A stretch of DNA of 64,000 nucleotides. It comes from Salpingoeca rosetta (lineage: Eukaryota > Protista > Choanoflagellata). Both the position numbers and the translations under genes were made by a program. Below the pieces are notes generated by a model. The model had not been told where the DNA came from. It did no database searches and saw only the letters and a list, made by a program, of their open reading frames with translations. Positions 29,551 to 61,736 of this stretch are shown here, in pieces; position 1 is the stretch's first letter; every line of letters begins with the position of its first letter. The stretch covers positions 420,444 to 484,443 of the forward strand of contig JAWQFM010000002.1 of assembly GCA_033442325.1 (NCBI GenBank), written 5' to 3'.

Positions 29551-29749
29551 CACCCTGTACCTGGAATACTGCACACGGAACCCGCGGTTGACTTGCTGGC
29601 GGCCGTTGTCGTCAATCCATGGCACGCGGAAGTAGTGCACCTGTTCCGGCTCGGCCAGCGTTTCCAGCACCTGATGAGGGCAGGGCACAAACACAAAACT
29701 ATCAGATGTGGTCTGCAACACCTCAGCATACCTGCATGTATGCAAGCAC

Positions 29750-29780
<31 letters not shown>

Positions 29781-34030: not shown

Positions 34031-34105
<75 letters not shown>

Positions 34106-38520: not shown

Positions 38521-38595
<75 letters not shown>

Positions 38596-38720
38596 GAGCA
38601 CGCACAGTATTCCTGGCGCTGTGCTTCGTCGGCGTTGTCTGTTTCCTGGGGGATGCAGGTGACGAGCAGGTTGGAGAAGAAGGGCAGCAGCGACGGCAGG
38701 CACGCGCTCAGGCCTTGCAC
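35944..38720 (-). CDS. XPO5: Exportin-5, internal fragment (both ends in gaps)
   Basis: LKTLAAFVDWV..LLLMLCELL..AAADCLLLIVERKG..ERAPLL; YTFVKRLAQVITVLGTNQLC; PKNFDDY..FTLHP; QDFSDLEEWNSFFSVYRSQ. These are collinear with my recollection of human XPO5. Confidence 0.88.
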
Positions 38721-38921: not shown

Positions 38922-39021
38922 NNNNNNNNNNNNNNNNNNNNNNNNNNNNNNNNNNNNNNNNNNNNNNNNNNNNNNNNNNNNNNNNNNNNNNNNNNNNNNN
39001 NNNNNNNNNNNNNNNNNNNNN

Positions 39022-42000
39022 ATGCGTCGCCGCCAGTGCCGTCCCCGCGCACCAGGGAGAGGCGGTGGCGGTTGCGGATGGAGACGGCCGCGATGACCTG
39101 GCCCGCATTGCGCGTTGTGAAGATGGACCAGCGCTGTTCCACGCTGCGCGCAAGCACGAAGCTGCACGCACCGGGAAAATCGGCATTGAGCCCGTCCACG
39201 GTGAGGAGGTAGCGCGAGTTGAGCAGCCTGCACGTNNNNNNNNNNNNNNNNNNNNNNNNNNNNNNNNNNNNNNNNNNNNNNNNNNNNNNNNNNNNNNNNN
39301 NNNNNNNNNNNNNNNNNNNNNNNNNNNNNNNNNNNNNNNNNNNNNNNNNNNNNNNNNNNNNNNNNNNNNNNNNNNNNNGGCAGAGCTCAATGTACGGCGC
39401 AACGTCGACGACTGCATGGCACGCGGAATACTCGCGACCACGCAACGTCTTGGAGCACACGCGGTCGGCCCAGTCGGCGAGGGTGGCGTTGAAGGAGCAT
39501 GGATCGGCCGGGGGAACGTCATCAATGGTGCAGAACGGGTCTGGGTCGACAAACAGGCTCGCAGCCTCCGTGTCCACGAGCCAGCTCTTGGCGTGCTGCC
39601 ACAGGCTGGCGGCCACAACGCCATTGGACGTGATCAGGCCACTCGCGGGATCGTCGTTGTTTGTGGCGTCGGCGCTCAGCGGCTGTCCACACAGGCCACA
39701 CACGCGGTTGGCAAAGGTGACAGCTGGCGCACGCACCTGAAGCTGGCCAGACGCTGGTGCCCACGTGACTGTGACGCTGTTGGGCAGGCGCACAGTGAAA
39801 ACACCAGCGCCCTTCTGCACAACGACACCCTCCACGGTGGTGAGTGGCAGCGCGGAGGTCTCCTGGCCGTTGATGGTGACAAAGGAGCCCGCAATCTCCA
39901 CGACGAGGTTGAAGCCGAAGCGCACCGCGACGACCGAGTTGCACGAGCTCAGGCCACACGCCGTCTTGCGCGCTTGCACCTCAAACTCAGACATGGCCGA
40001 ACAGTCCTTGGCAACCACGTAGTCGCAGATGCCGGAAAACGCATTTTCGTAGCCAGAGAACGTGCGAACAAGGCCAACGTCGCGCATGAAGCACGTCATA
40101 AAAGAGCCCGAGCACGTGCTGCCGTCACCAAAGCACACCCCACACTCATCGACGATGGCCGGGATGGACGTCACACCGCTCCGCACACACTGGTCACGGT
40201 AAGCCTGCACAACCTCACATGTTGAAGGCGGTATGGGTGTTGCAACTGTTGATGTAGAACCAGACACAAAGGTAAGCGTGGAGCTCACTTCGGTGTCAAC
40301 AACAACAAGTGCCTCTTCACATGCAACAACATACGGTCGAGGATCAACGTGTTCGTGACAAAAAGAAAAATCACCAAGACGGTCAGCAAGTGCATAGCAC
40401 TGATGTGGAGCAGGAGGTGGTGAAACAGAAGAGTCGATAAAGGGAGTTGCAGTCGTGGTTGTTGTGCCGTTGCCGTCTGTGCGGTCGCGCAGGCGGTCCT
40501 CGGCCTCCTGGCGCGACCTCCACGCCTCAATCATGAGCCACGCCGCGTCCAGGTCACCCGTGGCACACACGTCCTTGATGCACTCCTGCGCCATGTCGCC
40601 GGCAGCGGCACACACCGTCACTGCCTGCGCCTCAAGCTCCGCAGACTGGCACTCGTCCGAGGGCTGGTAGCCGTCCGGGCGCTTGTTGTACGTCTCCCAC
40701 GTGTTGGGCGCGTCGTACCACAGCAGCGAGGACGCGCGCGACACGCGGTCGTAGTCGACGGTGGCGCTGTCGTCTGCAGCGATGCCGTTGTACAGGGCGC
40801 ACAGGCCGCCGGTTGCGTTGTTGAAGAGCGGCGACACCGCAACGTGGATGTTGAGGTAGCGCGAGCCCTGTGCCGTGAGCTCAAAGCCCAGTGCCTCGGA
40901 GTAGAGCGTGCACGAGCGGCTGTACTCGCAGCGCACGTTCACGCCGTCCAGCGAGGCCTGGAAGGTGGGGTTGCTGCTGCTCAGCTCCGCAGCGAGGCTG
41001 TTGTACGTGCGCACGATGAGGCGGCCCGTGCTCGGGTACATGCCCACGCGCAGGCCAGACTCGCGGAACAGCGCCTCAAAGGCCGTGTTGCCCGAAGCGC
41101 TGCCGAGCGGCTCGTGCCGCACCTGCACCTCCACCAGCGGCGAGCGCAGCAGGTAGAACTCGCCCACGCCGTAGAAGTCGAAGCGCGCGCCATCGAAGGT
41201 GGTGAAGTGCGGGTCGCCCGCGCTTGTGCACAGGCCGCCACGTGAGGAGTCGACTGGCGGCTGCACGGGCGGGCGAGGATCGATCACCGGTGGCTCGGGC
41301 TCCAACGGCAACGTGGTGGTGTAGGGCGCAGCGGTCGTCGTGGTCGTGGTTGTTGTGCCGTTGCCGTCTGTGCGGTCGCGCAGGCGGTCCTCGGCCTCCT
41401 GGCGCGACCTCCACGCCTCAATCATGAGCCACGCCGCGTCCAGGTCACCCGTGGCACACACGTCCTTGATGCACTCCTGCGCCATGTCGCCGGCAGCGGC
41501 ACACACCGTCACTGCCTGCGCCTCAAGCTCCGCAGACTGGCACTCGTCCGAGGGCTGGTAGCCGTCCGGGCGCTTGTTGTACGTCTCCCACGTGTTGGGC
41601 GCGTCGTACCACAGCAGCGAGGACGCGCGCGACACGCGGTCGTAGTCGACGGTGGCGCTGTCGTCTGCAGCGATGCCGTTGTACAGGGCGCACAGGCCGC
41701 CGGTTGCGTTGTTGAAGAGCGGCGACACCGCAACGTGGATGTTGGAGGTAGCGCCGAGCCCTGTGCCGTGAAGCGGCACACACACAAACCGGGCGTGCAC
41801 CTCAAAGACGCCATGTGGGTCCTTAGCCAGCACAAAGTCACATTCGGCAAGCGGTTTCACAATCGCGCCTGGCACGGACAGGACTTGCCCGCTGGAGAGC
41901 ACGGTGCAAGTCGGGAACTGCTCTGCGCACGAAGTGCCGTCGCCGCCACACACGCCACAGCGGTCCCATGCCAGGAAACGCACATACTCGTTGTTTGCGT

Positions 42001-45000
42001 CACAGTACTCCAAGAATGACGCTGCGCCCTCGCACTGTGAATACGCGCGGCCGGACGTGAGGGCTTGGCACGCGTCACGCAAGCAGGCGTCGTACAGAGA
42101 TGAGACGAGTGAGTCAGAGCATGTGGCCGAATCAGCGACTGCGCCTGGGCTGAGGACACACAGGCGCTTTGCTTCTGTCAAGGCAGACGAATCGAGGTTG
42201 CACGGGTTTGGTGGAGGCTGTACGGGGCCAATGCATTCGCTGTTATGAGAATCAATGAGCGCGGTGCCTTCAGGAACCTGCCAGCTGTTGGCAAACACGT
42301 ACGTTCTTGCCGTGTTGATACTAGTGTATACATATCCATCCGCCGTCTTGAAGTCGTCGATCGCAGAGCCAGTAAAATCGCCGCATAGGCCGCACATGCG
42401 GCCCTTGAATGAGCTTGTGGCAGAGACTGTGATCCTGGAGAGCGCGTTGGAGATGCGAATCTCAATGCCACTGTGAAGCTCAATGCTCAGGGTTCCGTCA
42501 AGCTCGTGCGAGATTTGTGTGCTGTCCCTAGCAAGCAGCATGGGCAGGAGTGCGGTACTAGTCACTCTCCCGTTGACCATCAGTGTGCCGCTGTGGACCT
42601 CGATGTGATGCTGACCCAGCGTGCGCACGCCAACGGCAAAGGTTCCGGCAGTCGGGTGTGGAATGATTTGCACCTCAAATGAGCTTTCCTCGCAATCCTT
42701 TGCTAGAACGTACGAGCACGTTCCCGCGAAGTCGTACGCACTCAAATCGAATGTGGTGAAGTGAACGCCGCCAAATGCAGAGCAGGTTGCGAGTTCTTGC
42801 GCGCAGGAGGAGCCATCGCCAAACGCAACCCCGCAGCGGTCAATGATGGGCGGCTGCGGCGCCCACCCGCGGTCTTTGCAGAGCATGTCGTACTGGCGAA
42901 TCGCCGACGTGGCGTGCAGTGGGTAGCACATGTCAGCAAGACATGCCTCATAAAACGGCTCAGGGCTGAGCACTCGGTGGCAGGAAGCAAATGGGCCGTC
43001 TGTGTCCACAATGATGGTGCAGCGGCGGCGGCCTTCCTCGATGACCTGCGCATCTGCGTCAGCGCATGGGTCAACGGGCGTTGGCGGCACGGGCTCATGG
43101 TAGCACACGCCCTCCCTCGAAGCAAACAGCGTCGACGGCGCGGACGTGACGTTGACCACGGCCCAGCTCAGCCCAAACTTGTACGCGTTTGTGGTGAGCA
43201 CACCGGCGCTGGTGACGAGGTCGTTGGAGGTGACGTTGTCGTACTTGCCGACAAGACCACAGACGCGGTCGGAGAAGCGGTCCGGGACCCACACGGAGAG
43301 GATAGCGTCCTCAGTGTACTCAATCTCAACACCGTTGCCCATGGTCACAACCAGGGTGCCCTGCAGGGTGCGGGACACGGTGGTGCCGCCCCTGAGCAGC
43401 AGCGGAAGCTTGGTCTGCAGCTGGCCGTCCACAAGCACATCACCAGTGAACTGCAGCTCCACGACCGGTGATCCGTGTGACGTGATGCCAACGCCAAAAG
43501 TGGAAATGCCGGCGTTGGTCACGTTGCGGTTGCGCACGTGGATCTCAAACTCGTTGTACAGGCAGTCCTTGGCAAACACGTAGTCACACGTGCCGGAGAA
43601 GCTAAACACGGTTTTGTCCAGGGTCACGTAGTGGGGGTCACCAAACACGGTGGACACGCTGTACGTCTCCAGGCACGACTCGCCGTTGCCAAAGCACAAG
43701 CCACAGCGGTCAATGACGCTGCTTGCCTCCACGGGGTCTGGGCTGCTCTTGAGGCAGCGATCCTCGTAGGCAGCGTACACGCCGCACGCCTTCTCGGCGC
43801 CGCCGGTGCAGTAGTCGCTGATGCACGCATCAACGTACGCGGACGGGCTGGCCCAGGCGTGGCAGGCAGCATACGGGCCGACGTCGCTGGCAAGTGCGGC
43901 GCAGTAGTCCTCGGCCAGCGCCTGTAGCGTGGCGTTGTTGAGACAGGGACTGTCGCGCTCCAACACACGCGGCGAGCACATGGCGCCGGAAGGGCCAAGG
44001 AAGAGCGCGTCGGTCTCGGGCGAGTGCCAGGTAAGGCCGGCCTGCTCGAAGGTACACGTACCGTTGACGGCGCACCCGGGCACGTTGCTGCCGTACGTGC
44101 TGACGTCGTCCAGGGCGGTGTTGCACAGGCCGCACAGGACGCTGGAGAGACGCACGTGCGCGCTGATGGCGGTCTGGCCCGAGAACGGGTTCCACGAAAC
44201 AACCAAGCCCTCGCGCTGGGCGGTGACAATGAGGTCGAAGCCGTCGCTGCGCACGACAATGCCGCCATCCAGCACGCTCGGCACCTCGGTGACCTCAATG
44301 CCGTCGAGGAACACGCGCGGGCCGTCCAGCTCCAGCGCCTGCTCGCCAATGCGCACAAGCAGGCGCGTAAACGCGTCCGAGCCCTCGGGCTTGTAGCCGT
44401 GGATGGCAAACGAGCCGTGGGCGCAGTCCTCGGCCAGCACGTACGAGCACTGGCCGTGGAACGTCTGCAGGTCGTTGGAGACGGTGGCCACGTGGGAGCC
44501 GAGCACGGCGCACTGGAGGTTGGAGGAGGCGCATGTGGAGCCGTCACCGAAGCACACGCCGCACTCATCCAGCACCGTCTCGATGGCAGTGAAGCCAGAC
44601 TCAATGCACAGGTCCTCCAGCGCAACAATGTCTGTGCATGCGGCCTTGGCAGCCGGTGTTCCAATCAACAAGGTTAAGCTGAGATCGATTATGGCGGACG
44701 TGTCGGTTGAAATGCTCGTGGTGTCCGTGGCAGACTCCGCCTCAGCTGCAAGGGTGATGCAAAAGTCGTACACGCATTGCTCAAACAGCCTGCTGGTTCT
44801 GCCGACGCCAGCGGCAAGACATGTTGCGTACGGGCCAGCGGTATCGCGCAGCACGTGGCAGTAGTCCTGTGCCACTTGCAGAAGCTCTTCAGATTGCTCG
44901 CAAGGGTTGCGGGGTGGGGTGTTTGGATCAACAACAACGGTACCGTTGGCACCAGTGCCACACTGTTCTGGTTTGGCCCACTGGATACCAAACGCCCACG

Positions 45001-48000
45001 CGGCAGCCACGCTGTCACTCAAGTGCGCTGCGCCCATGCAGAGCCCGCAGCCACGTGCCAGCAACCGCTTCCGCACCTGCGTGGTGACGACGTCCTCGCC
45101 GTCAAACGCAAGCACAAGCTGAGGCGTACGCACAGTCAAACCCGCGGCCGCTGTCTCAAGCACGGTGCCGCTGTTTGTCGTGAAGGGGAACTCAAACACG
45201 TACCCGCCATCAACCGTGGCCAGACCAAAGACAAACTGCAGCTCGTCGCCGGTGGAGACGCGTGTGCGCGCCCTCTGCCTGACGCCGTTGAGTAAGATGC
45301 CGCCAGCACCAAACACGGGCCAAAACTTTCTGCGGCGGATACCCAAGAGCGTCGCCAGGGTGAAGTCAGAGCGCATACCGTCTTGCTCTGCAGTCACGTG
45401 CACAACGCTGGGAAGCAAGCGAATGACCTCTGTGGTGGCGTTTTGTGGCCGGTCAAGCTCAACCACGACAGAAGTCCCGCTTTGCGTGTACGAGCAGCGC
45501 TCGAGCGTAACAGAGAGGGAAGACAATCGACAATCCTCCAAAACCGTGTACGCCGACGTGCCCGCAAATGTAAACGTGCTGTTCGTCTCAAAGGGACGTA
45601 CGGCAGATGCTCCACGCAGCGTGCATTTGGTCCACTCATCTGCGCATGCCGAGCCGTTTCCGAAACAGACACCGCAGATGTCAACGACATCCTCAATGAC
45701 GACAAGCGACCGCTTGCACGTGCGCTGGTAGTCAGAGATGGCGGTGCAACTGCCTTGCATCGCAAGTTTCTGGGTGGAAGCAGAACAGTACGAGGCCAAG
45801 CACGCCTCGAGGTATGCAGATGGGTCGTGGACGGAGAAGCAGGGCGATAGTTCGCTGTTGGCACGGGCAAGCACGTTACAGTACTCCGTTGCTTGTGCCT
45901 GGACGTCTCCGCTTGCATCTGCACACGGCCCGCTTGCAGCAGTGGTAGTGTCCTTGGGTGGCGGGACGCACACCTTTGGTGCAAACATGGCTGTTTCTGC
46001 AGATATGGCCAGTGTTTTCGCGTCATTTATAACGCTTGCTACACCGTTTGGAACGCGAGAGAATGACGTGCACCAGCCAAACATTGCGGGAACCCGGTCT
46101 GCCTGAATGGCCAGCTTGACTGAGACGGGCGACACCGTGATGGCAATGCCGTATGCCGGGATGGCGACGGTGACAGTTGCGCTGCTGGACAGCTGCGAGA
46201 CACGCGTGTCGTCCGAGGGGAAGAGCAAAGATACACCAGCACCCGCATCATATGCCACTGTACCCGCATCGCCACTGTGCTGCACCTGAAGCGATCCGCT
46301 GCTGGCGATGGTTAGCTGCCAGCTATTGTGGCGAGAAACGCCGACTGCAAACGTGTCAGTCGTCTGGCGTGAAAGCGTCACCAACAGGCTTTGCGCATCA
46401 ACTTTGTCTGCAAGCAGCAGCACCTCACACTCAGTTGGCACGGTACCCAGTGCAGCATCGTCGAGCGTCACCACAGAATTCACGCCAGAGAGGCTGCACT
46501 GTTCGCTAGTCTGCGCACATGATGTGCCATCACCGTAGCAGATGCCGCACACATCCCGAACGGAGTCAATCTCAAGCAGCCCACCGGTACGCGTGGCGCA
46601 CGCGCGCTCGTACATGCCGAGCAAGTGGCACGCTTCCTGGCGGGCAATTGCCGCTGAGCTGGCAGCACACACACGCAGTACACACAGGCTGAAATACGTT
46701 TTGGTGGGCTCCACGGAGCGGCACTGCTCGTACTGAGCCGTTGGCTGCTCATCGTTGAGGTCGGCGCACAGTGTCTTTGCGAGATCGCACAGCCCATCAT
46801 CAGTCGCTGTCGGAGGATCCACAACTGTGCCGTTGTCGTTGGGTTGAACGTTGCAGGTTGATGCTGACGCGGCTGCAAGGACGTTGCTCGGTGTCTCAGA
46901 CACAGACGCGAGGCACGCACTCCTCGTTTCCCCGCTGATGGAGGCAGCGGTGATGATATTGCTTCCAACTTGCACGTGCGTTCTGGAATCAGCTCCGTCT
47001 GTGACGCGAACCTGAACCAGCAGCGGCTGCGGTGTTGTCGTGCCGCTCGCCACTGCTGTGCCGTTGTACATGTGCACAGTCATCTCCGAACCGTCGTGCG
47101 TGAGCAAGAGGGACGGCAGGTAGTATGGGAAGCCCGTCAGAATGCGATCTTTACCTAGCAGCACACGGCCAGACTGCCGCGGATCAATCAGCAGGGATTG
47201 GACGACACCCTCTTGCTGTGAGCCAGACGCAACAGCTGTTGTGTCATTTACGGTGATGGTCACAGCGCCGGTGTGCACGTTGCGCATTACCTGCAAGTGC
47301 TCCGTCTCCAGAAGCAACACGCTGCATGTTGTTTCGTTGCTGACGTCGCCCAACGTCATGAGAACGCTGGAGCTTGTCGTGTAGCGGGGATCGGGTGAGA
47401 ACGTGATCACGGAGGTGTCCAAGGCCATACAGCCATTGGCGAGGTTGCACGTTGAGCCATCTCCGTCACACACGCCACACACATCGAAACTTGAGACGAT
47501 GCCCTGTACATTGTTGGCAAAGCAATGCTGCTCAAGGGCTGCTAGCCGGCTGCAGCGCTCATTCGTCATCTCCGCATCGGCCGTCGAGCTCGGTAGAGAG
47601 CAGAGGGCGCGAACACATCCCTCGTACACGGCGGTGAGGTTGATTGCTTCTCTACACGGAGCATAGTCGCTTCCAAGCACAATGCTGCACATGCTCTGCA
47701 CACGCTCGCTTGCACCTGCGCTGTCGCACACAGCGTCCTCTGGCTCCGGCGCGTTGCACGTCGGTGATACAAACAGAACGTCGTCGCCAAGGCGCTGGAG
47801 TGACCCAACGCTGCCACCAGCGCAAACGCCGCCGCTGACACGCACGTCTGTCATCGCGGATGTGATATCTGCGCCAGCTCCAGCGCCAGGCAGAAGTGAG
47901 GCATGCACGGCAATGGACCACCCCGTTTGCGATGAGGTGAGGCTCACCTTGACCAGGCCACCAAACAGCGTTACGGCACCCGTTGAACTCACGAGCCCAA

Positions 48001-50990
48001 TGTCGCTACTGCCCAGCATGGCGGGCAGAGTCACATCAGAGCCATCAACAAGAACAGTACTGCCGCCGTCTCTGACCTCAACTGTGATTGTCGTCGTCGC
48101 ATTGCTCCGACTGGTGTTGATGTCGTTCGCACCATTGTCAGCTGGTACGGAGACAGCAATGGCCAGGTCGGCCCCGCCGTTTTGCGTCTGGATGGACAGC
48201 ACATGCGCGCGAGAATCTTCGATGCCAACGGTAGCAGAACTCGCTGAAGAAGAAGAAGAAGACAAGGTCAGCACCTCATACGCGCATTTCTTCTCAAAGA
48301 CTGTGGTTGTAGCGTCAAATTCGGTAAGCAAGCCAAGCCTGCCATCAAGACTGCAGAAAGAGCCGCGGAAGGCGCTCACGTATGGCAGGATGCATGACGA
48401 GCTGTCACCACCACATACCCCACACACATCGCGGGTGGCTGTGGGCAGTCGCAGACCACACTCCTTCTCTGCTCGGGCAATGGCGTCGCACGCCGCAGCC
48501 TCTGATGCGCTGCAGAAGGATTCGATGCATGTACGTACAAGATCGTCCATGCGCGCAGCCAGCGTGGGGCACGTGGCCTCAAAGGCCAGTTTACTTGCAT
48601 TGCTAGAGAGCGCTGAGCAAAACTCCATTGCAGCAGCAAGTGTCTCTGCTGTAGCCGCTGCACACGGCTGCTGCTCTGTCACAGTCACAGACGTGGGGCA
48701 AACCGCGTCGGTGACTGCGTGCTTCTGCACATCTTCAGGTGCTGGTGCCTGGGTGTTTGGCAAAGCACAGAGGCCACATGCCTGATCCTGATGGCCGATG
48801 CCTTGCTCGGGAGCAATGATTTGAACGTTCGTGCTGCTGAACACAATACGCACACCCGCATCTGGGATGGCGGCTGTGACAACACCTTCATCGCTGATAC
48901 CTGCGATGTGCATGTGTGACCCGAACACATGACCAGCAGCAAGCCGCTGTGGTTCAGAGTTGAAGGTGGCGACGGGGACGTCTGATGCACTGCTGACAAA
49001 CAGCGACAGCTTGTCCTCGCCGGCGGAAATGGTGATGGACTCCACGCTGTTGTCGGCGCTCGAAAAGTTGGCGACAATTCCAAGAGGAACGGTGCCGCTG
49101 CTATCGCCACCGCACATCGAGAGAAGGTGATACGTGCACGACGGATACATGGGAACACTGACATCCTGGTAGAAAGACTTGAAGATGCCCCGGAATGCAT
49201 AGTCACATGTAACCTCCCCAGCACAGGGCAGCTCGCTGCTGCAGGGCGTGCACACATCGGTAGCGCTCGGCTCAAGCGTGATAGGTGCCCCGGCCTCCAA
49301 GCAGGCGTTGGCATATGCGTCGCGTGTAGCACAGATTGATGCATGGGCATTTTCGCATGGGGCAGATTCACACGCGTCAATGTACGGCTGTGGATCAACG
49401 ACAGCCTGGCAGGCAGCGAATGCACCGTACCGATCTCTGAGCGCAAGGCAAGCATCCGAGTTGCAAGCAGCAGGCGGCTCCTCTTCGTCTGAGCACGTGC
49501 GGTTGGCAAACTTGAGCAGGTGGCTCGTGAAGCCAACAACTTGTTGAGACCCGTAAAGGTACGGGGAATTGTCCTCCATCAACCCAACAATTGTGTCGTC
49601 GCTGGCAACGCCGTTGAAGTTGCCGCAGAGACCGCACATGCGCTTGCCCAGGAACGCAGCACTTCCTTGAACGGCGATCTTGCCTGTCACAACGGACCAG
49701 GTGACCGTCAGGGTGAGGTCTGGGACAGCCACCTCAAAGCCAGACGACAGACGTGACACCACACTGCTGCCGCCCAGCGCAAACCGAATACCTTCGAATG
49801 GCTCCGTGCCAACGAAAGCTTCCCACACGCCGTCGTTCACGTAGAATGAGACGGTGTCATAGTCAAAGACTTGTACCGCAACGCCAACGACACACCGCTG
49901 AGAGCCGTCACCACAGGCCGCAAGCGTCGCCTGCACCTCAAACGCGTCGGACTCGCAGTCCTTGGCGACGACGTAGGTGCACATGCCGGGGAACTGCCAC
50001 ACGTGCTCATCAAAGGTTTCAATGAGCATGCCGTCGCGCACGGTGCAGGTCGCATCTGCCGCGCACGTGGAACCGTCACCGTCGCACACGCCACAGCGAT
50101 CCACCACAGCGGCGTCGCGCGTGTGGCCCTCGGCGATGCACAGCTCGCTCACCGTCTGCACAAACGTGCACCCAGCCTGCTTGTACGTGCTCTCGCTTGT
50201 TTCCTCAGCTGTCTGGCACACCTCATCAATGCACGCATCAAAGAGGGCGCCAAAGTCCAGCGTAGAACTGCTGCCGCTGCTGCTGCGGCACGACTCGAAG
50301 AAGCCGCTTCCAGGTAGCAGCTGCGAGCATGCTTCCTGTGCAAGCGTCTCGTCCGCACCAGGGATGCTGGCGCACGCCTCCCCGGCATCCGGCGGTGTGG
50401 GCCGCGTGGGCTCGGTGCAGGCTGGGTTGGTGCCCAGCGCGTCGCTGGCGTCAGCAGTCTGCCAGCTGCTGAAGAAGCCCGCCTGTGTTCCTGCCACGGT
50501 GCCGTCGCTCTTGGTAAAAGGGTCGACCCCAGGGAAGCCGCCACACACGCCCTCAACGGCCCCAGCGTACACATCCTCCGCCACCTTCACCACGGCCTCG
50601 TAGCCGTCCCATGCCACCAACACCTTGCTGGCATGAAGTTTGGCCAGGACCGTCGCGCCCTCGCGCACGATTTCGTGGTTGTTGATGAGCTCGGCGGGGA
50701 AGGAGGACACGGCGCTGCGGCCAACGCGCACGCTCGTGTCGGATGCAAGCACGATGGTGGGGATGCCGGGGACCTCAATGGCCAGGCCGCCGACGCACTG
50801 CGTTGCCCCGCACGCCACGTGCTTCACGTAGACGGCAAACGCATCCGAGGAAGCAGTGTCGTTGGCCGTGACGCTCATGGTCTGGTTCTGCGTGCGCAGC
50901 ATGACGTAGTCACAGCTGCGCGGCTCCGAAAACACGGCGTCGCCAATCGTGCGCCAGTGGCTCGCACCGGACACGCGGCACGTCTCATAC
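39022..50990 (-). repeat. Tandem array of ~14 VWD(-C8) modules; two further VWD-like domains at ~51040-51480 and ~53050-53540
   Basis: Repeated CxxxG/GDPH..TFD..F.G.C.YVLAKDC, xCGLCGNF.G...D and C8-like CxxL..GPFAAC...P.PY..AC..D.C motifs. Confidence 0.85.
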
Positions 50991-53900
50991 GCACCGTCGT
51001 ACGGCTGCAGCTTGCGCCGCACAATGCCGCCGTCCGTGCACGTGCCCATGATGCCGAGCGACGCGCTGCAGTAGTCGCGGGACACACGCCCGTCAACGTT
51101 GAAGAACTTGCCGGAGAGCGTCACCGTGACCTTGAGGAAGTCTGGGCCGGTGACGACGTACGAGCGCTGCGACTCGCGAACAAGCTTGTACCCGTACCCG
51201 AGCTGGAGCGAGCCACTCAGGTCGAGCAGGGAGCCGCCCACGCGCAGCGCAACGGCCGCCGTCTCAAAGTCCGCGTCCAATACAACGGTCACGTCGTCCT
51301 CAATCACAATGCGCACTTGGTTCGTGCACGAGGCCGAGGAGTACAGGCACTTGACCTGGCGCGCGTACACCTCAAACGCCTCAGTGGGGGACGCGCTCAT
51401 GAGGAACGTGCCCTGCAGATCAAACGTGAAGGAGCGGCCAATCAGGTTGGTGAAGTAACCCTCGCCAAAGATGGACCACAGCGGCAGCTGCACCACAGGC
51501 AGGTCTACGTCAGACACGGAGCAGTCTGCGCCAGACTTGCCAGCCGTGCACGAGGAGCACTGGTCGTCGCCCTGCCAGTCGGGCTCGCACAAGCAGGTGC
51601 CCGAGGTGACCCGGCACGTCCCGTGGTCGGAGCAGGGGTGCACCGCACCGCCCGGACACACACCCGCACACGAGTCGCCCCAATAGCCTGAAAGGCACGC
51701 GCAGCTTGGAGAGCTGGAGGCCGCGTCAAAGGTGCCGAAGAAGCACGTCTGGCTGCAGGCAGCACCGAAGAAGTCTGGGAAGCGGATCACGCCCTGCGGG
51801 AAAGACTGGCAGTACGAGGCGCCGGGCCACGTCGTGACGACGTCCAAGGACGCCTGGCACATGTCCGCAAAGCCAACGATGGGCACAATGCCGAGCGCCA
51901 GGGCCTCGCCTCGCGAAATGTCGGCCGTGCACGAGTCCTCAAAGTACTGGCGGATGGCCGGCCCCAGCTGGCGGCACGTGACCCCAAAGGCGGAGGTGGC
52001 GTTGAAGGCGGCCTGACACCGGCGCTGGGCCTCGATACGAAGCGTGACGCTCGTCCACGACGTCTTGTACAGCGCGTCAATGCCCGTCGACATGCTGTCA
52101 ATGGCAATGTTGGCGTCCGAGAAGCGCCAGGTCGGTGCGCGGTACACGCTGCGCGGTGGCAGGTAGAGGCAAGGGGCGTCAAACTCCGCCGACGCGCAGT
52201 CAATGCTGGACGCGCTGTCGCGCACGCTCTCGCCCTGGCCCTCGTTAAACTTCCACAGGGAGGCGAGCCCGCTGGCGTCTGGCTGCACACTGGTGCCCCA
52301 GGTGCGGGAGATCTCGCGCGCGGTCAGGCGCTTGTTCCAGATGCGCAGCTCGTCAATGGAGCCGACAAAGACAGATGCCGGCGCAGAGTCGCCGCCAATG
52401 GTGGAGAGGCCAAACTGGCCCAGCGTCAGCGTCCCACCGGGGCGGAACGGGTTGCCGGCCAGCACAAACGTAAACGATTTGGGCTGTGGCAGGCCGTCCG
52501 AGCCGATGGTGGGGTGCGACACAAAGTAGTGCAGCTCCAGCAGGTTGTTGAGGCCGTTGAGGACGGGCGCCACACCAGCGAAATCTGGTTCCAGCTGTCG
52601 AGCTCAAGCGCAATGTCCGTTTCGTATACGCGGCCATTCCAGATGATGACGAGCTGCCCCGAGACAAACTCGGGCGGGCACGGCGTGACGCTGTCCAGGC
52701 ACACCAGCCGGTTCACCACGGCGAACGTGTGGCTTGTGGCAAAGGACAGCAGCGTGCCCCCGTGCGCCTCGGCAAACACGAGAAACTCGAGCGTGATGGC
52801 GGCGTCGGAGAACGTGTACAGCGGCTTGCTGGAGCAACCCGTGTCGTTGAAGTGCAGCGCAAACCCTGCCACGGAATCCTCGCGCCGCTCGTTGTAGCCG
52901 GCGTACCCGTACACCACGCCAAAGGGCGAGTTGGCGCGGGTCACCGCCCAGAAGGGCCCAACCAGCTCGTGGATGTTGGTCTGCGTCAGGTTGGTGGAGA
53001 CAATGGTGCCCTGGCCAACGTCCGCGAGGAACTCACCGTCGGCGTTGAACACAAAGTCATTGGTGGGCGTGTCGTCGCAGTGACCGAGCATGCCGCCAGC
53101 AAAGTTACAGATGCCCACGGGTGCGTACATGCGCGCGCTGAGGGCGCGTCCAAACACGCGCACGACAATGCGAATCTGCTTGTCCTCGCTGACAATTGTG
53201 TACGCGTGCGCCCCGGAGCGACGCAGCACGTAGTCTTCGGCAATGGTGAAATCAACAACCTGGCCTCCCAGGCCAACCTCGACCGGCCTGCCGCCAGACC
53301 ACATCAGCACCGCCTGGCCGTCCTCGTACGGCGCGCGAAGCACAAACACCGTCGAGCCCACAGTCACGGCAACCGCCGTCACGCAGAACGCCTTTCCACC
53401 GCGGCACGTCGTCTGTCGCACGTGCAGCTTCAGCTCGGGCTGCTCAGAGTCAAACACAAGCAGCTCGCCAGAGGCGTAGTAGTTGAACGCAGCGCCGTCC
53501 ATGCTCACAAAGTGGCCAAAGCCATCCACAGCAAGGTAGGGCTCTCGCCCGGGCGTCAGCTCGGTCGAAGCCACGGAGCAATCATAGCCAATCCAGCCGT
53601 CTGCACACCGCGAGCAGCTGGTGCGATACGGTGCCTTGGTCGACGGATGCTGCTCTGGTACGTGGTGGTTGGGATACGTGTAGTCAAACTCACGGCGCAC
53701 GCGCCTGCGCGCTGCTTGTGTCGATAATGCGTCGCTGTCGGCGCTGCTGCTCTCGTTGTCCTCGTCACTGTCCAGGTCGCGGCGCGGGCGGTACTCTTGG
53801 TAGTCAATGCCACTCCACCGCAGCTCACACTGGCACTCGCCCGTGGTCGCGCTGCAGGTGCCGTGGCCGTTGCACGGGTTGCTGCCGCCGCCCGGGCACT

Positions 53901-56900
53901 CAAAGTCGCACGTGTCGCCCCAGTAGCCGTGGCGGCAGCGGCACACGGGCTCGTCGAGGCCGTTTGCGGGCGTCGGCGCAACAGTGTCTGGTTGCGTCGT
54001 GGTGCTGCCACCGGTGTCAGAGCCGCCGTCGCCGTCGCCGTCGCCGTCGCCGGGAATGGTGCCCGTGCACGCCGGTGCATCTGCCACGCGGAGGATCAGG
54101 TACTTGTCGTGGAAGTTGGCCTTGGTGTTGGTCAGGACCCACGTCAAGCTGTCGGTTGCCGTGGCCAGCACAATCTTGAACACGTAGTGCACGCGGCCGG
54201 AGCGGAAGCGGGTTGGCTGGCCCAGGTTTTCGTTGGTGCGCGTTGCCGTGGACGCTGCGGTTGATGTGCCCTCCTCAGCAAAGAAGGGTGGCAGGTCTGT
54301 TGCCGCGGGCGTCACAATAAACTTGTTGTCCGGCCCGATGGGGACATTGAGGGGAACCGAGTTGAAGTTCTCGTAGCCGAGCCACACCTCATAAACGCCG
54401 TTGTCCGTCTGAGAGACGCACTCCAGCTTGGGAACAAGCGGGCGCGCATCCGAGGCCAACAGCGATACGTCGCCCGAAGCACTGTCATCCTGCGACCCAG
54501 ACCCGGTGTCCTCAGCCACCACCTCGGAGCGGTCAACGACGTCACCGTGCCCGGCCTTGCAGCGAAGGCCGCAGCCCTCGGCGCCGTAGTCCTCGTGACA
54601 GCGCGTGCAGGCAGGGTACTCCCATCCTTCCTGGCAGTAGGTGCAGCTGGCACCTGTCCAGTGTCCGTTGTCATCATCATCGTAGCACTGACAGATGTCC
54701 TCATCCTCGCCAACGCCGCGGCCGTTCACGCAGTACACGCTGCAGCCCCTCGTTGACCAGCCAATGTAGTTGTCCTCGCAGCGCTCGCAGCCCAGGCCCG
54801 TGTAGCGGTCGGCGCAGCGCTCGCACGCGTCGCCGTCAAAGCTGTTGTCGCACACGCACTCGGGCACGTCCTTTCCGGGCGGCACGACACACTGGCCGCG
54901 GCCGTAGCAGGCAGGGATGCCGGGGCACACCAAACGCTCGCACGCGTCGCCCTCAAATCCGTCGTTGCACAGACAGAACGTGTTGTTGCCCTTCACCAGG
55001 CACAGCCCACGGCTGTTGCAGTCCGGCTCCCCAGGGCAGTCGATAAACTCGCAATACTCGCCCTTGCGCCCGGGCTTACAGTGGCACTGGAGGTTGTCCA
55101 GGGAAATGCCGAGCGCTGGGTCCGGCGACACAAAGCTGCGCCGGCTTCGCTCAGCCACGGCCTCCTGCGAGGCGTGGCCGCGCCCAATCACAGCGCGACG
55201 CCGCCGGTTGGGCGCCGTGCTGTTGCTGTTGTTGTTGCCGCTGCTGCCGTCCATCAGCGTCGAGGTGCCATTGTTGCTGCCGCTGCTCGTGGTGTTGGCA
55301 CTGTCCATGCCGGGAACAGGTGTGCAGAGCAACGTGGTGTTGACAGGCTGGTCAGCGGTGTCAACGTACGTGCGACTTGCTTCGTCAAGGGTCACGTTGA
55401 CACCGTGCACTTCCAGGAACTGCTTGCCGCTGATCTGGTACGTCGCTGTTGCCAGCTGCGTGAGGTTGCAACCAAGCGGCAGAGGCCCATCCCACACCGT
55501 GCAGTTGGGGCCGGCCCAGTCCTGGATGCACTGGTTGCAGCGTGAGCCAAGGATCTTCTCGTTGAAGCACTCGCATTCCGGAACCACGCTATCGAAGTAG
55601 AGGACACACTCTCCCTGCCCAGAGCACATGGGTTCGCCGGGGCACACGTACTGGGCACAGTCCTCGCCGCCAAAGCCCGTGTCACAGTCGCAGGAGGGCA
55701 GCGCGTCCCCGTCCGGCCACACGCACTCGCCGTGGCCAGAGCAGCCGTTGGGACAGTCAAAGTCGTTGCAGTATGTCCCGGTAAAGCCGGGTTTGCACCC
55801 GCACGTGCCGAGGCCGCCGCACTCAATGTCGCAGGCAACACCGGTGTAGCATGGGTCGCACTCGCAGTTGCCGCTGTTCATCGGCACCTGGTTACCGTGT
55901 TCGCACGGCAGCTCGCATGCCGGGCCCATCCAGCCCTTGGTACAGTTGAGGCAAATGGGCGGGTCAACGCCGGCGTAGCACGTGCCGCGGCCGTTGCAGT
56001 CTGGGGTGCCAGGGCAGTCTGGGATGTCGCACCCAGGGCCGCGCCAGCCGGGGTTGCAGAAGCACAGCTGTTCCTCCGAGTTGCACACGCCGTGGCCAGT
56101 GCAGCTCTCGCCCGTGCCGGGGCAGCCCTTGATGTTGCACTTGGGCCCCCACCACGCCTCGTCGCACTCGCATGCGCCATTCACGCACACGCCGTGGTCG
56201 CTGCACTCGCGGTCGCAGTTAGGGCCGTCAAAGCAGACGGCGGGCTCGCACACGCAAATGCCAGAGTCCATGGGGATCTGCGTGCCGTTCACGCAGGGGA
56301 TGTCGCAGGCTGGACCCATCCAGCCGTGGTGACAGCCGGTGCACACTGGCGGATCTTGCAGGCCGGTGCAGTCGCCGCGACCAAAGCAATCTGGCTCGCC
56401 AGGGCAGTCTGGGATGTGGCAGCCCGTGCCAATCCAGCCGGCGTCACAGGCACACTCTTGCGTGGCCACGTTGCAGAGCCCGTGATCGGTGCATGGCGAA
56501 CCCACACCCGGGCACGCGCGCACCTCGCACAGGGGGCCCCACCAGCCAACGCCAGGCACACCGCAGTCGCAGAACGCGTTGCCGTCGTCGTCTTCAGCAC
56601 ACGTGCCGTGGTTTGAGCACTCCAGGTCGCAGCTGAAGCCGGAAAAGCAGTCGTCGCACTTGCAGTTGCCAGAGTCCATGGGCTCCTGGTGGCCGTGCAC
56701 ACAGGGGATCTCGCAGGCCGGGCCCATCCAGCCTTGCGTGCAGTTGCGGCAAACGGGCTCGCCAAGGACCTCATCAAACACACAGTCGCCGCGGTCATTG
56801 CAGTCATCGGGGCAGTCGAGCTCCTCGCAGCCTTCGCCGCGGAAGCCATCGTCGCAGGTGCAGACCTGGGTCACCTCGTTGCAGTCGCCATGCCCGGAGC

Positions 56901-59900
56901 AACTCTCGCCGTTCATGCCGGGGCAGCCGCGCACGCTGCAGTCATCGCCGTACCAGCCAAGCCACAGGCCGTCCGCTCGTCGCTCGCACTCGCACATGCC
57001 GTTGTTGCACGTGCCGTGACCAGAGCACATGATGTCGCAGCCAGCACCGGAGAAGCACTCATCGCAGACGCAGACGCCGGAGTTCTTGGGTGTCTCCGTG
57101 CCGTTGATGCAGGGCTCGTTGCAGTCAATGCCCATCCAGCCATCGTCGCAGTTTATGCAGCGCGGCTGCTCGCGGGGAAGGCCCTCGCACGTGCCGCGCC
57201 CATAGCAGTCGGGGTCACCGATGCAGTCCGGCTGGTCGCAGCCCTCGCCCAGCCAGCCAGCGTGGCATAGGCACTGCTGGGTGCTCGGCTGGCAGTCGCC
57301 GCGCCCAGAGCAGTCAATCCAACGCCAGGGCAGCCTCGGCGCTGGCAGAACTCGCCCCAGAAACCCTCACCGTTGAACGTGCCGCAATCGCAGGTGCCGT
57401 TCACGCAGGTGCCGTAGTCGTTGCACAGCAGCTCGCAGCCGTCGCCGTGATAGCACGGCTCGCACACGCAAATGCCCGAGTCCATGGGCTCCTGGCGGCC
57501 GTGAATGCAGGGCTCATCGCAGGCCTCGCCCATCCAGCCAACCGCACAGCCGGTGCAGCGCACATCGACAGTGCCATCCTCTAATACGACTGGGCGACAC
57601 GTGCCACGGTCATTACAGTCCTCGGGACAGTCTGGCGTGTCGCAGCCAATGCCCTTCCACCCGGGCTCACAGGTACACTCAAACAGGGCTTCGTTGCACT
57701 CGCCGTGGCCACTGCAGTCCAGCGGCACGCCTCGCTGCAGGACCGTGCGCGTGCCGTTGATGACCTGCACAGTGCTGCTGGAGCCGGGGCAGCCGGGAAT
57801 CTCACAGCCGGGCCCGCTGTAGCCGAGGTCAAAGTCGCACTGGCACACGCCATTGACACAGTCGCCGTGGTCACCACACACGGTGTCACAACTGATGCCC
57901 GTGTAGCAGTCCTCGCACACGCAGCCCGCCGTCTGGTTGGCAAAGGCGCCGTGCACGCACGGCAGCGAGCAATCTGGGCCCGTGAAGTTGCTGTTGCACT
58001 GGCACTGCTGCGTCAGCGGGTCGCAAGTGCCTTGGTTGTTACAGGGCGGGTTGCCGGGGCACACGGGCTCCTCACAGGCGATGCCGCGCCATGCACCGTC
58101 GCAGACACACTCTCCGGTGGCGCCGTTGCATTCGCCGTGGCCGTTGCAGTTGCCGTTCTCGCCAGGGCAGCCGGGGCGATCGCACAGCTCGCCCCGCCAC
58201 GAGTTGCCAACCTCTGTTGTGTAGCAGTCGCACTTGCCGTCGACGATGACGCCGTGGCCAGAGCACATGGCATCGCACCCGCGGCCGCTCCAGCCAGGGT
58301 CGCACTTGCAGTAGCCAGAGTCCATGGGCTCCTGGTGTCCGTGCACACAGGGCTGCTCGCAGGCCGGGCCCATCCAGCCGTCCTCGCAAGACTGGCACGT
58401 GGGCTGTCCAGGGGCAGTGGCATTGCAGAAGCCGCGGCCGTTGCAGTCTGGCGTGCCGGGGCAGTCTGGGATGTGGCAGCCAATACCGGCCCAGCCCGGG
58501 CTGCACACGCACTCCGTGGTGGCAGCGTTGCACTCGCCGTGTCCAGAGCAATCCAAGCCGTACAGACCGGGGCAGCCAGGCACCTCGCACAGGGAGCCCT
58601 TGTAACCGAGCTCAAACGTGCACTGGCACTTGCCGTTGACAATGCGGCCGTGGTTGGAGCACTCTGCGTCGCAGCCACGACCTGCCCAGCCGGGCTCGCA
58701 CACGCAGATGCCCGAGTTTGGGGGATCTTGGACGCCGTGGACGCACGGGTCGTTGCAGGCAGGGCCCATCCAGGGGCCACGGCAGTCCTGGCACAACGGT
58801 GTTGGCAGCGTGTAGTTGCAGAACCCGCGACCAAAGCAGTTTGGTGAGCCGGGGCAGTCTGGCGTCTCACAGCCGGGTCCCGTCCAGCCGGGTTCACAGT
58901 CGCACCTCGCTTCAGCGGCGTTGCACTCGCCGTTGCCAGAGCACGACTGGCCAATGCGCATGCGCTCCACGCCGCTCAGGCCACACACGCCGTCTGCCGT
59001 CTCGCCTCCGATGCAGGGCCCATTGCCCGGGCAACCGCGGATGTCACAGCGCTCGCCCCAGTAGCCGGAGAGGTAGTGGCATACGCAGGTCTTGGTGGCG
59101 GAATCAATGGTGCCGTGGCCGTTGCATTCGAGGTTGCAGCTCTCGCCTGTCCAGCCAGGGTCGCACACGCAGATGCCCGAGTTGGGAGGGTCTTGAACGC
59201 CGTGGACGCAGGGCGTGTTGCAGTCCGGGCCCATCCAGCCCTGCTCGCAGTTCTGGCACACGGGATTGGGCAGCGTGAAGTTGCAGTAGCCGCGACCAAA
59301 GCAGTCGGGCTCACCAGGGCAGTCTGGCGTCTCGCAGCCGGGGCCGCGCCAGCCAGGGTTGCACTCACACACGGCGTCGGCGGTGTTACACTCGCCGTTG
59401 CCCGAGCAGGACTTGCCAACACGCATGCGCTCGGCGTCGCTCAAGCCGCACACGCCTTCTGCCTCACTGCCTGGGAGACAGGGGCCGTTGCCTGGGCAGC
59501 CAGGTACGTCACAAAGGTCACCCCAAAACCCTTTCTCGTAGGTGCAGATGCAGAGCTTCAGGTCGGTGTTGTACTTGCCGTTGTCACTGCACTCTGCATC
59601 GCACCCGACGCCGGCCCAGCCGGGATCGCACACGCAGATGCCCGAGTTTGGCGGGGTTTCCGTGCCGGCAACGCACGGCTCGTCACAGCCGTACCCCATC
59701 CAGGGACCCACGCAGTCCACGCAGCGCACAATGTCGTAGTTGGTGGAGTCGCACGTGCCTCTGTCATGGCAGTCGGGCTCACCGGGGCAGTCTGGGATGT
59801 GGCAGCCGACGCCGCGCCAGCCGGGGTAGCAGGTACACGTGTGGTCTGCGTTATTGCACTCGCCGTTGCCCGTGCAGTCGACGCCGTAGCCAGGGCAGCC

Positions 59901-61148
59901 CGGGATGTCGCACAGGGGCCCACGCCAGCCCGTGAGGAAGTCGCACACGCACTCGCCAGTGGTGGCGTTGATCTTGCCGTGGCCGGAGCACTCGCGGTTG
60001 CAGCCCTCGCCGGCCCAGCCAGGCTCACAGACGCAGGTGCCAGAGTTTTTGGGCGTCTCTGTTCCATGCAGGCAGGGCTCGTTGCAGCCGATGCCCATCC
60101 AGCCCTCGTCGCAGTCGATGCAGCGCGGCGTGTCGGCAAAGTCTGGGCTGCAGGTGCCGCGGCCGAGGCAGTCGGGCTCGCCAGGACAGTCTGGGATGGA
60201 GCAGTCGATGCCCGCCCAGCCGACGGCACACACGCACTGGTGCAGGTAGGCGTTGCATGCGCCGTTGCCGTTGCAGTTGCGGTCGGGGCCGGGGCAGCCC
60301 GGTAGCTCGCACAGCTCACCGTACCACACGCTGTCGCAGTCGCAAACACCGCTTGAGCACGTGCCATGCTCGCTGCACTCAATCTCGCAGAACTGGCCGT
60401 GGAAGCATGCGTTGCAGCGGCACAGGTCAGCGATGCACTGGCCCTGGCCACTGCACTCCTGTTCACAAAACTGGCCACCATAGCACGGGTCACACACGCA
60501 CTGGCCCAGCGGGCTGCACTCGCCGTGGCCGTTGCATGTCGAGTCACGATCGCACTGGTACTCGCAGCGGTAGCCGGACCAGCCGGCATTGCACACGCAC
60601 TCGCCCGCAGCGTTGAGGGCGCCGTTGCTGGCCTCGCAAAAGTCTTGAAAGGAGCATGTCAGACCAGCCCAGCCTGCGTTGCATTGGCATTGGCCGGCAA
60701 CAAGGCTACCGTGGCCGCTGCAGGCGGTATTCACGCATTGCGAGCCGTCGTCGCCGTCGTCATAGGTTGGGCTGCCAGCGACAGAATAGCCCTGTTGGAT
60801 GTCAATGTTTGCTTCATGGAACGCGGAGGTGAAGACTCGTCCACCGCCACCACCGCCGCCGTAAGTTGGTGTGCAAAGGTAGCAGCTGTGGTAGCCGCCA
60901 TTGCCGCCGCGAGCCTGTGTGGTGCCGTGGCCCTCGAGGTAGTCTGCTTCCAACCAGACGCTTCCACCAGCACCGCCACCGCTGCCGCTATGGCCGGAGC
61001 CTCCGTTTGAGGAGGCGCTTCCATCATACTCAAGGCGCGTGGAAGCAATGATTTGCACCGCACCGCCGCCCTCGCTGTATCCTGCCGCAGTGCCGATCAC
61101 ACTCAGGATCAGGCAGATGAGCAGGCAAGCAGCTCGGGCCGTGCACAT
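39022..61148 (-). CDS. Giant secreted Cys-rich protein (>=~7,370 aa, no introns seen): signal peptide, partial Gly-rich repeat, EGF array, VWD, LamG, VWD-C8 array. Two 1-nt frameshifts (~57318, ~52566); C-terminus in gap
   Basis: GCCACC-ATG at 61148 and signal peptide MCTARAACLLICLILSVIGTAAG. Three long ORFs (61454-57153, 57135-52426, 52573-38708) join into one when a single base is restored inside an EGF repeat and inside the LamG domain. Confidence 0.85.
40452..41744. repeat. Identical ~402-nt direct repeat (40452-40853 = 41343-41744, offset 891 nt) inside the giant ORF
   Basis: The nucleotide sequence and its translation NIHVAVSPLFNNATGGLC...DGNGTTTTT occur twice. Confidence 0.92.
52230..52870 (-). 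other. LamG/pentraxin-like domain in the giant protein (spans the ~52566 frameshift)
   Basis: FALHFN..ITLEFLV..GGTLLSF..WNQISLVW / GGTLTLGQ..FVGSIDELRIWNKRLT..LWKFNEGQG. Confidence 0.8.
54560..60740 (-). repeat. Tenascin/teneurin-like EGF array organised as ~11 four-EGF super-repeats
   Basis: Recurring GCPG..CSGHGECN..CxCxxGWxGxxC / xPDCPGxPDCxGRGxC..GWMGxxC / PCxHGxxxPxxSGxCxC / ECSxHG, with a period of about 135-160 aa. Confidence 0.9.
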
Positions 61149-61736
61149 GGTGGCGCACGTCACTGCTGCTGTGTCGCCCGTCGTGCGGGCTTGTTTCTTT
61201 TGTCTCTGTTCTGTATGTGTTTGTGTCTCTGGGATGGATGCTGAGGATGTCGGTGGTGTTGTTGCGTTGTGGCTCGTTGTAGTTCTTGGAACAAGGGAAA
61301 TATGTTGCGGTGTTTCGTGTGTGATGCTGGCCATTCTGCAATGATGTACACAAATCATCGCGAATGAGATCTCAGAGTGTTTTCGGGTGTCGTGTCGCGA
61401 CGCTACAACGAGAGACAAATAGGACAGCACAAGCAAGGAATAGGACAGCACCATTGGGTTGTCTGACTCTTGAGGGAGACATGAATGATCATGTCACCGT
61501 TGTGACATCGCTGCACTTCAAAGTCTTCACTTGTTTATCAAGCCAGCTTGTATCGAGAAAAGCAGAGAAAATCAGAGGCAATCAGACAAATACATGCACA
61601 CACAGTAACGAAAGCACAATGCCATTTCACGACAAAACAATCGAACAACAACGACAAACTTGAGACACACACACTCATACACATGCACGCACACACGCAT
61701 GTTCACAGCCGATGCGCACGCCGCATCAACGTTTCT

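Follow-up and report, generated by a model that had tools for sequence, protein, structure and literature searches.

The window analysed here, a stretch of 64,000 nt from the choanoflagellate Salpingoeca rosetta (contig JAWQFM010000002.1), carries on its minus strand a giant coding stretch that runs from position 61148 to 39022 with no stop codon, intron or microsatellite inside, and that appears to encode an extracellular-type protein built of EGF, LamG and VWD-C8 domains. The stretch is distributed over three stop-free pieces: piece A (61493 to 57153; 1,447 codons), piece B (57366 to 52426; 1,647 codons) and piece C (52603 to 38708; 4,632 codons, with two N gaps counted in). A chance open reading frame (ORF) was ruled out by stop statistics: at this composition a stop is expected about every 36 codons, so that 4,394 codons would stay open with a probability of about 1e-53, and 62-180 stops were counted in the off-frames of the coding stretch. 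When scored in 300-nt windows, GC content was highest at the third codon position without exception in pieces A and B, and with 12 exceptions, corresponding mostly to divergent middle modules, in piece C; the GC content at third codon positions (GC3) was 0.80, 0.82 and 0.73 for pieces A, B and C, respectively. Comparison with a paralogous locus, described below, yielded ratios of nonsynonymous to synonymous substitutions (dN/dS) of 0.34 (942 codons, dS 0.14) and 0.27 (273 codons), as well as 0.18 (746 codons) for an ORF situated upstream. The stop-free frames, the codon periodicity and these dN/dS values of 0.18-0.34 lead us to consider region 39022-61148, as judged from its sequence, as real coding sequence under selection.

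A preliminary description of this DNA had presented the region as an intronless ORF of at least 22 kb, free of microsatellites and still open at an assembly gap, in the midst of intron-dense genes full of GT/CA repeats. The region is certainly open, coding and over 22 kb long, but it is not a single ORF, as it occupies three frames separated by two 1-nt indels. Likewise, it is intronless inside 39-61 kb, where neither of the frame changes is an intron, whereas its 5′ end is open to a spliced reading. The other statements were borne out. Tandem Repeats Finder reported around 120 microsatellite rows in positions 1-38921 and zero in 39022-64000, where it found only two short GC-rich repeats and a 465-nt EGF repeat; the frame is open to position 39022, and the ORF of the paralog carries on past the equivalent point. 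The neighbouring genes, for a glutamate dehydrogenase, an Alg9-like transferase and an exportin-5-like protein, consist of short exons parted by introns bearing (TG)n; choanoflagellates are intron-rich organisms (PMC5560861).

The largest feature of the 5′ half is an array of tenascin/teneurin-type EGFs (55477-60743), organized in DNA super-repeats of 390-465 nt and holding the first of the frame changes (frame break 1). Pieces A and B contain at least 44 tenascin/teneurin-type EGF signatures, or at least 46 with two that come after a Cys-rich region further downstream. Pfam profiles EGF_TEN (E 3.5e-90 and 7.2e-54) and EGF_Teneurin (E 7.5e-89) both scored above their cut-offs, with 302 and 292 bits, respectively, in piece A, and 183 and 151 bits in piece B. 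The array is followed, at 53542-55476, by a Ser/Asn-rich linker with motifs RRRR and RSRR, more EGFs, a segment of about 150 residues and an EGF that is interrupted by an acidic insert, with RPRR and RRRVRR at its two sides. The segment (54007-54519; about 150-170 residues between EGFs, including the sequence YEVWLGYENFN) had no Pfam match at E≤0.1, and the ESM Atlas returned for it only weak neighbours (bacterial clusters, score 0.82) and no family. The first VWD domain, which is stand-alone (53050-53529; E 1.5e-5, 25.8 bits versus a cut-off of 22.9), opens a conserved unit that continues with a LamG/concanavalin-like domain (52304-53049) and with a Cys-rich, helical-looking region plus two EGFs (51434-52303), the latter being part of a unit of about 470 residues in common with animal proteins. 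The LamG-like domain is split by the second frame change (frame break 2) and its match to Laminin_G_3 is partial, comprising only profile positions 113-151 (E 1e-5, 26.2 bits versus a cut-off of 27.6); the ESM Atlas gave only weak LamG leads for 51404-52603, and the domain aligns to PF13385-bearing units of a sea-urchin protein (P0001, see below). There was no hydrophobic 21-mer in the readable window protein except at its start.

Fourteen VWD-C8 modules occupy positions 39379-51433, and a fifteenth starts in 39022-39235, a 214-nt contig between two gaps that contains the last readable coding sequence. Pfam identified VWD (E 1e-95, 5.5e-41 and 1.5e-5) and C8 (E 3e-31 and 3e-14), but it picks up by itself just eight or nine VWD domains (eight above the cut-off in the window) because the middle modules are divergent. 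Using a purpose-built hidden Markov model (HMM) of the module, we found 15 VWD-C8 modules in piece C that, with the VWD of piece B, bring the VWD-like modules to 16. Thirteen of the 15 are nearly complete and ten are closed by a mini-module, CGVCxGDGSxC; a TIL domain is present in none (no Pfam match at E≤0.001 in any piece). The C8 domain lies directly behind VWD, has four invariant cysteines in the module alignment and is helical in the structural model. Two GDPH motifs occur, at 43631-43642 and 41207-41218, and a Thr-rich linker near 41350-41250 (near residue 3745 of piece C) contains just short Thr runs. Pfam gave no match to CTCK in the window pieces, the C-terminus of the window copy lying in a gap.

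We compared a profile of 15 modules from both paralogs with solved structures, and the matches included FCGBP (E 5e-255), VWF (8e-116) and MUC2 (6e-110), together with MUC5AC and MUC5B; the alignments cover profile positions 7-273, stopping at 273-281 of 291. In addition, an AlphaFold model of a module (predicted local distance difference test score of 81.5) showed template modeling (TM) scores of 0.69-0.77 to VWF D1-D2 and MUC2 D3. The closing motif CGVCxGDGSxC is of low confidence in the model and falls outside most of the alignments. From profile and model alike, the VWD-C8 modules are true homologues of D assemblies.

A paralogous locus on C34 (C34:655590-684980) is collinear with positions 39022-64000 of the window. 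Its nucleotide identity to the window is a mosaic, with tracts at 100%, 98-99%, 92% and 84-91%, and is lower than 70% between 44.6 and 49.9 kb, in the middle modules; additionally, identity between the paralogous proteins amounts to 55% along 2,960 residues. This degree of divergence rules out that the twin is an allele or an artefact of a duplicated scaffold. The window gene is one of two paralogs, and not a one-off, within a pair apparently homogenised by gene conversion and a family that has animal relatives. GC3 also forms a mosaic along piece C (39380-52561): it is 0.83-0.92 at 52.5-50.8, 44.8-43.6 and 41.8-40.6 kb, 0.56-0.69 at 49.6-44.8 kb, where the divergence of the modules from the paralog is greatest, and 0.56 at 40.6-40.0 kb. 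GC-biased gene conversion could be one reading of this pattern, whose fit to the paralog identity is not clean.

Beyond the equivalent of window position 39022, the ORF of the paralog runs for about 4,800 further residues, which comprise around ten additional VWD-C8 modules and EGF/VWD/LamG units, followed by a single strongly hydrophobic helix with a tail. The C-terminal LamG scored 30.1 bits, and there was no CTCK match in the last ~2,500 readable residues. Past the membrane helix and a tail of ~180 residues the frame of the paralog stays open (C34:641150-643300), with a later segment that looks Met-initiated (MVKNDPW...); this could be either a long tail or the next gene in the same frame. 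Since the paralog extends ~4,800 residues further, up to a membrane helix, the window copy appears to be cut off at the gap in 38922-39021. This nominal 100-N gap is followed in the window by (TG)n and by the exportin-5-like gene (37935-38715, minus strand), which begins at position ~98 of the Xpo1 profile, with an extra small exon at ~38600-38715, and lacks its 5′ exons. Because the paralog continues and the exportin-5-like gene lacks its 5′ exons at this same point, we infer that the gap holds missing sequence, both the 3′ part of the giant gene and those 5′ exons; it must therefore conceal far more than 100 nt, or be a mis-join.

The other gap (39236-39378; 143 N) is very probably in frame. 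The frame across it is open in the paralog: exactly 143 nt (C34:655804-655946) are found opposite the gap, they encode the remainder of the C8 domain, and their flanks are 98-100% identical to the window.

Frame break 1 (57319/57318) is a 1-nt deletion inside an EGF, whose sequence shifts frame by one base between ...CPGVG and ...DCSGRGDC. The window is missing one C that is present in the paralog, which stays in frame (paralog, GGCATTGAC; window, GGATTGAC; that is, GGCATT versus GGATT). Frame break 2 maps to a C-run (52567-52565) inside the LamG-like domain, and the protein proceeds from ...SLVWRP into the next frame as VLNGLNNLLELHYF; that it is a single-base indel was deduced from the domain alignment, whereas break 1 was seen directly against the paralog. 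Introns were ruled out at both frame changes, as the domain sequence runs on across each of them and the paralog differs by one base at break 1. The published assembly of S. rosetta was produced from 454 and Sanger sequences (PMC4054682), and the two breaks are more likely errors of that assembly than mutations, because there are only two indels and no stop codon in 22 kb, because break 2 falls in a C-run, and because the contigs of C34 are themselves rich in indels. Over ~1 kb, the small C34 contigs located between gaps show nine 1-nt indels relative to the window but only three substitutions, and the C34 copy has three frame changes at 656.7-659.1 kb. Likewise, C34:677444-679932 is made of short contigs between gaps that are 97-99% identical to window positions 56965-59562 and contain many 1-nt indels; this is probably low-quality sequence, and frame-based readings there should be taken with caution.

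The N-terminal end adjoins another long frame. An upstream ORF, also on the minus strand and encoding glycine-rich modules of the beta-helix type, enters from outside the window (61740-63998) and finishes at a TGA codon (61739-61737) that is overlapped by a GT (GTGAAG) at 61740-61739; it is 97.6% identical to C34:682733-684980. A non-coding spacer (61176-61739), which could be an intron or an intergenic spacer, separates it from the giant gene; the spacers of the window (565 nt) and of the paralog (1,534 nt) are not homologous. Next comes gccaccATG plus 23 codons (61080-61148) that display the n-h-c layout of a putative signal peptide, with an Arg, a 14-residue hydrophobic core and TAAG; the region of ATG 61148 is 99% conserved in the paralog. 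In an alternative reading, the same nucleotides, rich in pyrimidines, would close an intron, and the AG acceptors would lie at 61083-61082 and 61076-61075. The putative signal peptide is placed mid-way in a split glycine-rich module, the second half of which (60744-61079) leads into the EGF array. With a module HMM of 153 positions, trained without the junction, the last 64 residues of the upstream ORF correspond to positions 1-54, and the mature protein begins with a match to positions 62-141 (E 5e-19). Additionally, a metagenome protein of 154 residues (P0003, 60% identical) carries the module uninterrupted, its residues 35-49 aligning to the end of the upstream ORF and 65-128 to the start of the giant ORF. 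Because the two halves complement each other in the HMM and the module is whole in P0003, the upstream and giant ORFs each represent half of a single ancestral reading frame. The true N-terminus is uncertain, the location of the signal peptide in the middle of a module pointing to an intron or to an old gene split; in our view, a gene of its own with its start at 61148 is slightly more probable than splicing, and the two forms could coexist.

Together, these results lead us to propose, with a probability of roughly 0.68, that region 39022-61148 is one of two paralogous giant choanoflagellate genes with an EGF/LamG/VWD-C8 architecture, with frame breaks that are likely errors and a 3′ end hidden by a gap. 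Several observations weigh against this proposal. Break 1 is not a homopolymer error, and the window copy, which shows no membrane helix of its own, could be a truncated duplicate. Several of the middle modules have lost canonical cysteines, and the modules lack TIL and E. There is also an exact direct repeat of 402 nt (copy 1, 40452-40853; copy 2, 41343-41744; spacing, 891 nt), whose copy 2 comes after a truncated VWD and past which the similarity persists with three 1-nt insertions; the paralog has a diverged tandem duplication at this place. The exact repeat and the indel-ridden sequence beyond suggest a local mis-assembly that leaves the module count at 40.4-41.8 kb unsure. Finally, the function as an adhesion or matrix protein is proposed only by analogy with animal D assemblies.

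A larger gene than the one proposed is conceivable, although doubtful. The glycine-rich ORFs and the EGF-LamG-VWD stretch might form, or might recently have formed, one gene of >25,000 codons, in which the upstream ORF would be spliced to the giant ORF, the signal peptide would be intron sequence and the product would have >25,000 residues. The candidate intron extends from 61740 (donor AAA|GTGAAG) to 61075 (acceptor ACAG|C), has 666 nt and would maintain the frame, giving ...GAGA-N-EGGGAVQ.... Its ends have features suited to splicing, with a GT that overlaps the stop codon and an in-phase AG after a pyrimidine-rich stretch; module positions ~54 and ~62 meet across it with nothing lost or doubled, P0003 is uninterrupted over the equivalent junction, and the homology to the paralog ends exactly at 61741. 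In the paralog, however, the upstream ORF closes with ...GSN-TAA-(TG)n and the equivalent donor is absent, so that only a weak G|GTGGTG donor is shared. Additionally, homology to the paralog restarts 27 nt upstream of the ATG, about 100 nt ahead of the acceptor, and both copies keep a strong ATG context and a textbook n-h-c signal peptide. The spliced form and an internally started form could also coexist. If there were, or had recently been, one gene of >25,000 codons, the locus would offer a gene split in progress, in which a mid-module intron turned into a spacer that contains a stop codon and supplies an internal promoter as well as a new signal peptide, and an outer, bacterial-looking beta-helix part and a membrane-anchored adhesion part of animal type could be made together or apart.

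A search for transcript-derived fragments spanning the 61148 junction retrieved only two environmental proteins, none from this species, and when metagenomes were scanned twice for sequences related to the junction module, only two loci were found. One of these, a metagenome contig with a compact, bacterial-looking gene spacing, contains a bacterial-looking ORF of 2,743 residues (L017:1598-9829) that shares 35% identity with the glycine-rich module in its C-terminal part, a type of module that may thus also exist in bacteria; this locus is uninformative as to gene structure. At window-equivalent positions 84208-115084 of the same scaffold there are three minus-strand stop-free stretches of 4,594, 2,210 and 3,644 codons. 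The first is glycine-rich module sequence, and was used to train the HMM, while the other two are assumed to be glycine-rich; with these three stretches, the set of upstream ORFs would total ~17,800 codons.

It is unlikely that the window copy is a young truncated pseudogene, with two real frameshifts, a 3′ end lost in the duplication and C34 as the only functional copy. Such a history would account for the pair of frameshifts, including break 1, which is not a homopolymer error, for an ORF that ends at a gap with unrelated sequence beyond, and for the odd internal duplication after a truncated VWD. Yet two lesions and zero stop codons are little for 22 kb, and dN/dS is 0.18-0.34. Break 2 lies in a C-run and the C34 copy has still more 1-nt indels, which indicates that indels track assembly quality; likewise, the loss of the 5′ exons of the exportin-5-like gene in the same gap indicates missing sequence and not a true junction. 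As for several separate short genes, or one gene with many cryptic introns, the three reading frames and the in-frame ATGs (at 61454, 57135 and others) would agree with them, but they are highly improbable, since both frame changes occur inside a domain (EGF CPGV..DCSGRGDC and LamG-like), break 1 is a single-base indel versus the paralog and break 2 likewise by domain alignment, the modules abut with no unexplained spacers, and codon periodicity is maintained along the whole of pieces A and B and, apart from the 12 windows, along piece C, with no microsatellites.

For one of two paralogous giant genes, as we propose, the domain content agrees with the tenascin-like EGF arrays, LamG and ~16 VWD domains of the preliminary description: EGF_TEN, VWD and C8 were found with Pfam, the tail of Laminin_G_3 below its cut-off, and the VWD domains amounted to 15 plus one with the module HMM. 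Its suggestion of a matrix or adhesion-type protein in a unicellular relative of animals also fits an extracellular-type giant whose modules are homologous to D assemblies. Conversely, its idea of a secreted polymer does not agree with the near-identical paralog, and a membrane-anchored surface protein is a better guess, by analogy, because the paralog has a C-terminal membrane helix with a cytoplasmic tail behind it. By the same analogy, additional D modules and EGF-VWD-LamG units would follow in the full protein, together with a single membrane helix and its cytoplasmic tail; such a product would be a surface glycoprotein of type I, with a length clearly above 10,000 residues. Its EGF rod might keep the protein at a distance from the cell, and the array of D assemblies could bind to itself or to partners in the matrix through contacts that depend on calcium or on disulfides. 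The two modules with GDPH may self-cleave as in FCGBP and mucins, and the putative furin-type sites of the linkers could allow processing into fragments that remain associated. The protein might in this way participate in cell-substrate, cell-cell or cell-matrix adhesion.

The intron-free exon of ~22 kb is best explained by tandem duplication of arrays inside one exon, together with gene conversion between the paralogs. The EGF DNA repeats of 390-465 nt and the exact 402-nt repeat indicate this tandem growth, and a 22-kb exon in an intron-rich genome would be a clear case of arrays growing within one exon. Choanoflagellates are the reference point for adhesion and matrix parts that predate animals. 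D modules are the building blocks of animal mucins, VWF and FCGBP, and arrays of them were present in the choanoflagellate lineage in a simpler VWD-C8 form, minus TIL, and here on a probably membrane-anchored giant; likewise, the EGF-LamG-VWD unit is common to uncharacterised giants of sea urchins, hemichordates and molluscs. The gene is thus a candidate, and a testable one as knockouts are possible in S. rosetta, for a protein of surface adhesion or of the glycocalyx that predates animals. Additionally, the published assembly breaks and truncates the gene and holds a mosaic twin, so that gene counts and domain censuses based on it would be off.

Besides the exportin-5-like gene, the minus strand of the window contains genes for a glutamate dehydrogenase, with ELFV_dehydrog_N and ELFV_dehydrog in separate pieces, and for an Alg9-like mannosyltransferase (26614-30323 and 33768-34787). 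In these two genes, in-frame (TG)n introns mimic CVCVCV peptides.

The modules of the window gene share with the D assemblies of FCGBP, VWF and MUC2/5AC/5B a VWD beta-sandwich followed by a helical C8 and the CGLCG motifs, and two GDPH motifs are present; as in FCGBP, the modules are in tandem. Unlike D assemblies, however, they are devoid of TIL and E, and most are closed instead by the 10-12-residue CGVCxGDGSxC. The array is also combined with an EGF rod and LamG, and several of its middle modules are short of cysteines. In comparison with gel-forming mucins, there is no long domain rich in Pro, Thr and Ser, and no CTCK was seen, the C-terminus being missing. A membrane-anchored example among D-assembly proteins is zonadhesin. 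With tenascins and teneurins the window gene has in common the EGF type alone, as we found in it neither the FN3 and fibrinogen domains of tenascin nor the YD and NHL repeats of teneurin.

The occurrence of VWD with C8, and without TIL, in S. rosetta and Monosiga brevicollis was already published by Lang et al. (2016), who showed no data for the choanoflagellate VWD/C8 and deemed their own gene predictions probable false positives (PMC4948705). Their observation is the same as ours, and gives no architecture, paralogy, exon structure or membrane anchor (PMC4948705).

The preliminary description expected the gene to be mis-annotated as 3-4 fragments. An exact look-up of three simple ORF products in a protein collection found none of them, and a word search of proteins in the range of 2,424-7,714 residues gave one match, the uncharacterised LOC135154217 from the sea urchin Lytechinus pictus (P0001; 6,375 residues), and no gene model of S. 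rosetta. With a 534-residue unit as query, HMMER retrieved 112 cluster representatives at E≤1e-30, many of them with 3-13 end-to-end copies of the unit; for instance, query positions 14-516 align to P0004-P0020 in 3-13 stretches each. The named relatives are XP_070533132.1 from Ptychodera flava (6,778 residues) and KAL8620494.1 from Nucella lapillus (4,503 residues), both uncharacterised. The Lytechinus, Ptychodera and Nucella giants resemble the window gene in having an N-terminal teneurin-type EGF array, inside which the animal gene models begin, and in the ~470-residue LamG-Cys-EGF-VWD unit, aligned in full (query ~30-510) with 28-32% identity and E values down to 0. The C-terminal ends of the sea-urchin and hemichordate proteins are like that of the S. 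rosetta paralog, where a Cys-rich region is followed by a single membrane helix and a tail; a LamG ahead of this end was seen in the sea-urchin protein only. In contrast, the animal giants carry the unit in 8-13 repeats and were not matched by the VWD-C8-CGVC module HMM, whereas in the window gene one unit precedes the array of 15 VWD-C8 modules. Two partial metagenome sequences, P0021 (4,073 residues, from a 17.3-kb contig) and P0022 (3,081 residues), are 39% identical over the unit and have 11 and 7 matches, respectively, some of them partial, to that same HMM. Each of the two is encoded by one ORF, of 9-12 kb, indicating that intron-free exons of great length are not restricted to the present assembly.

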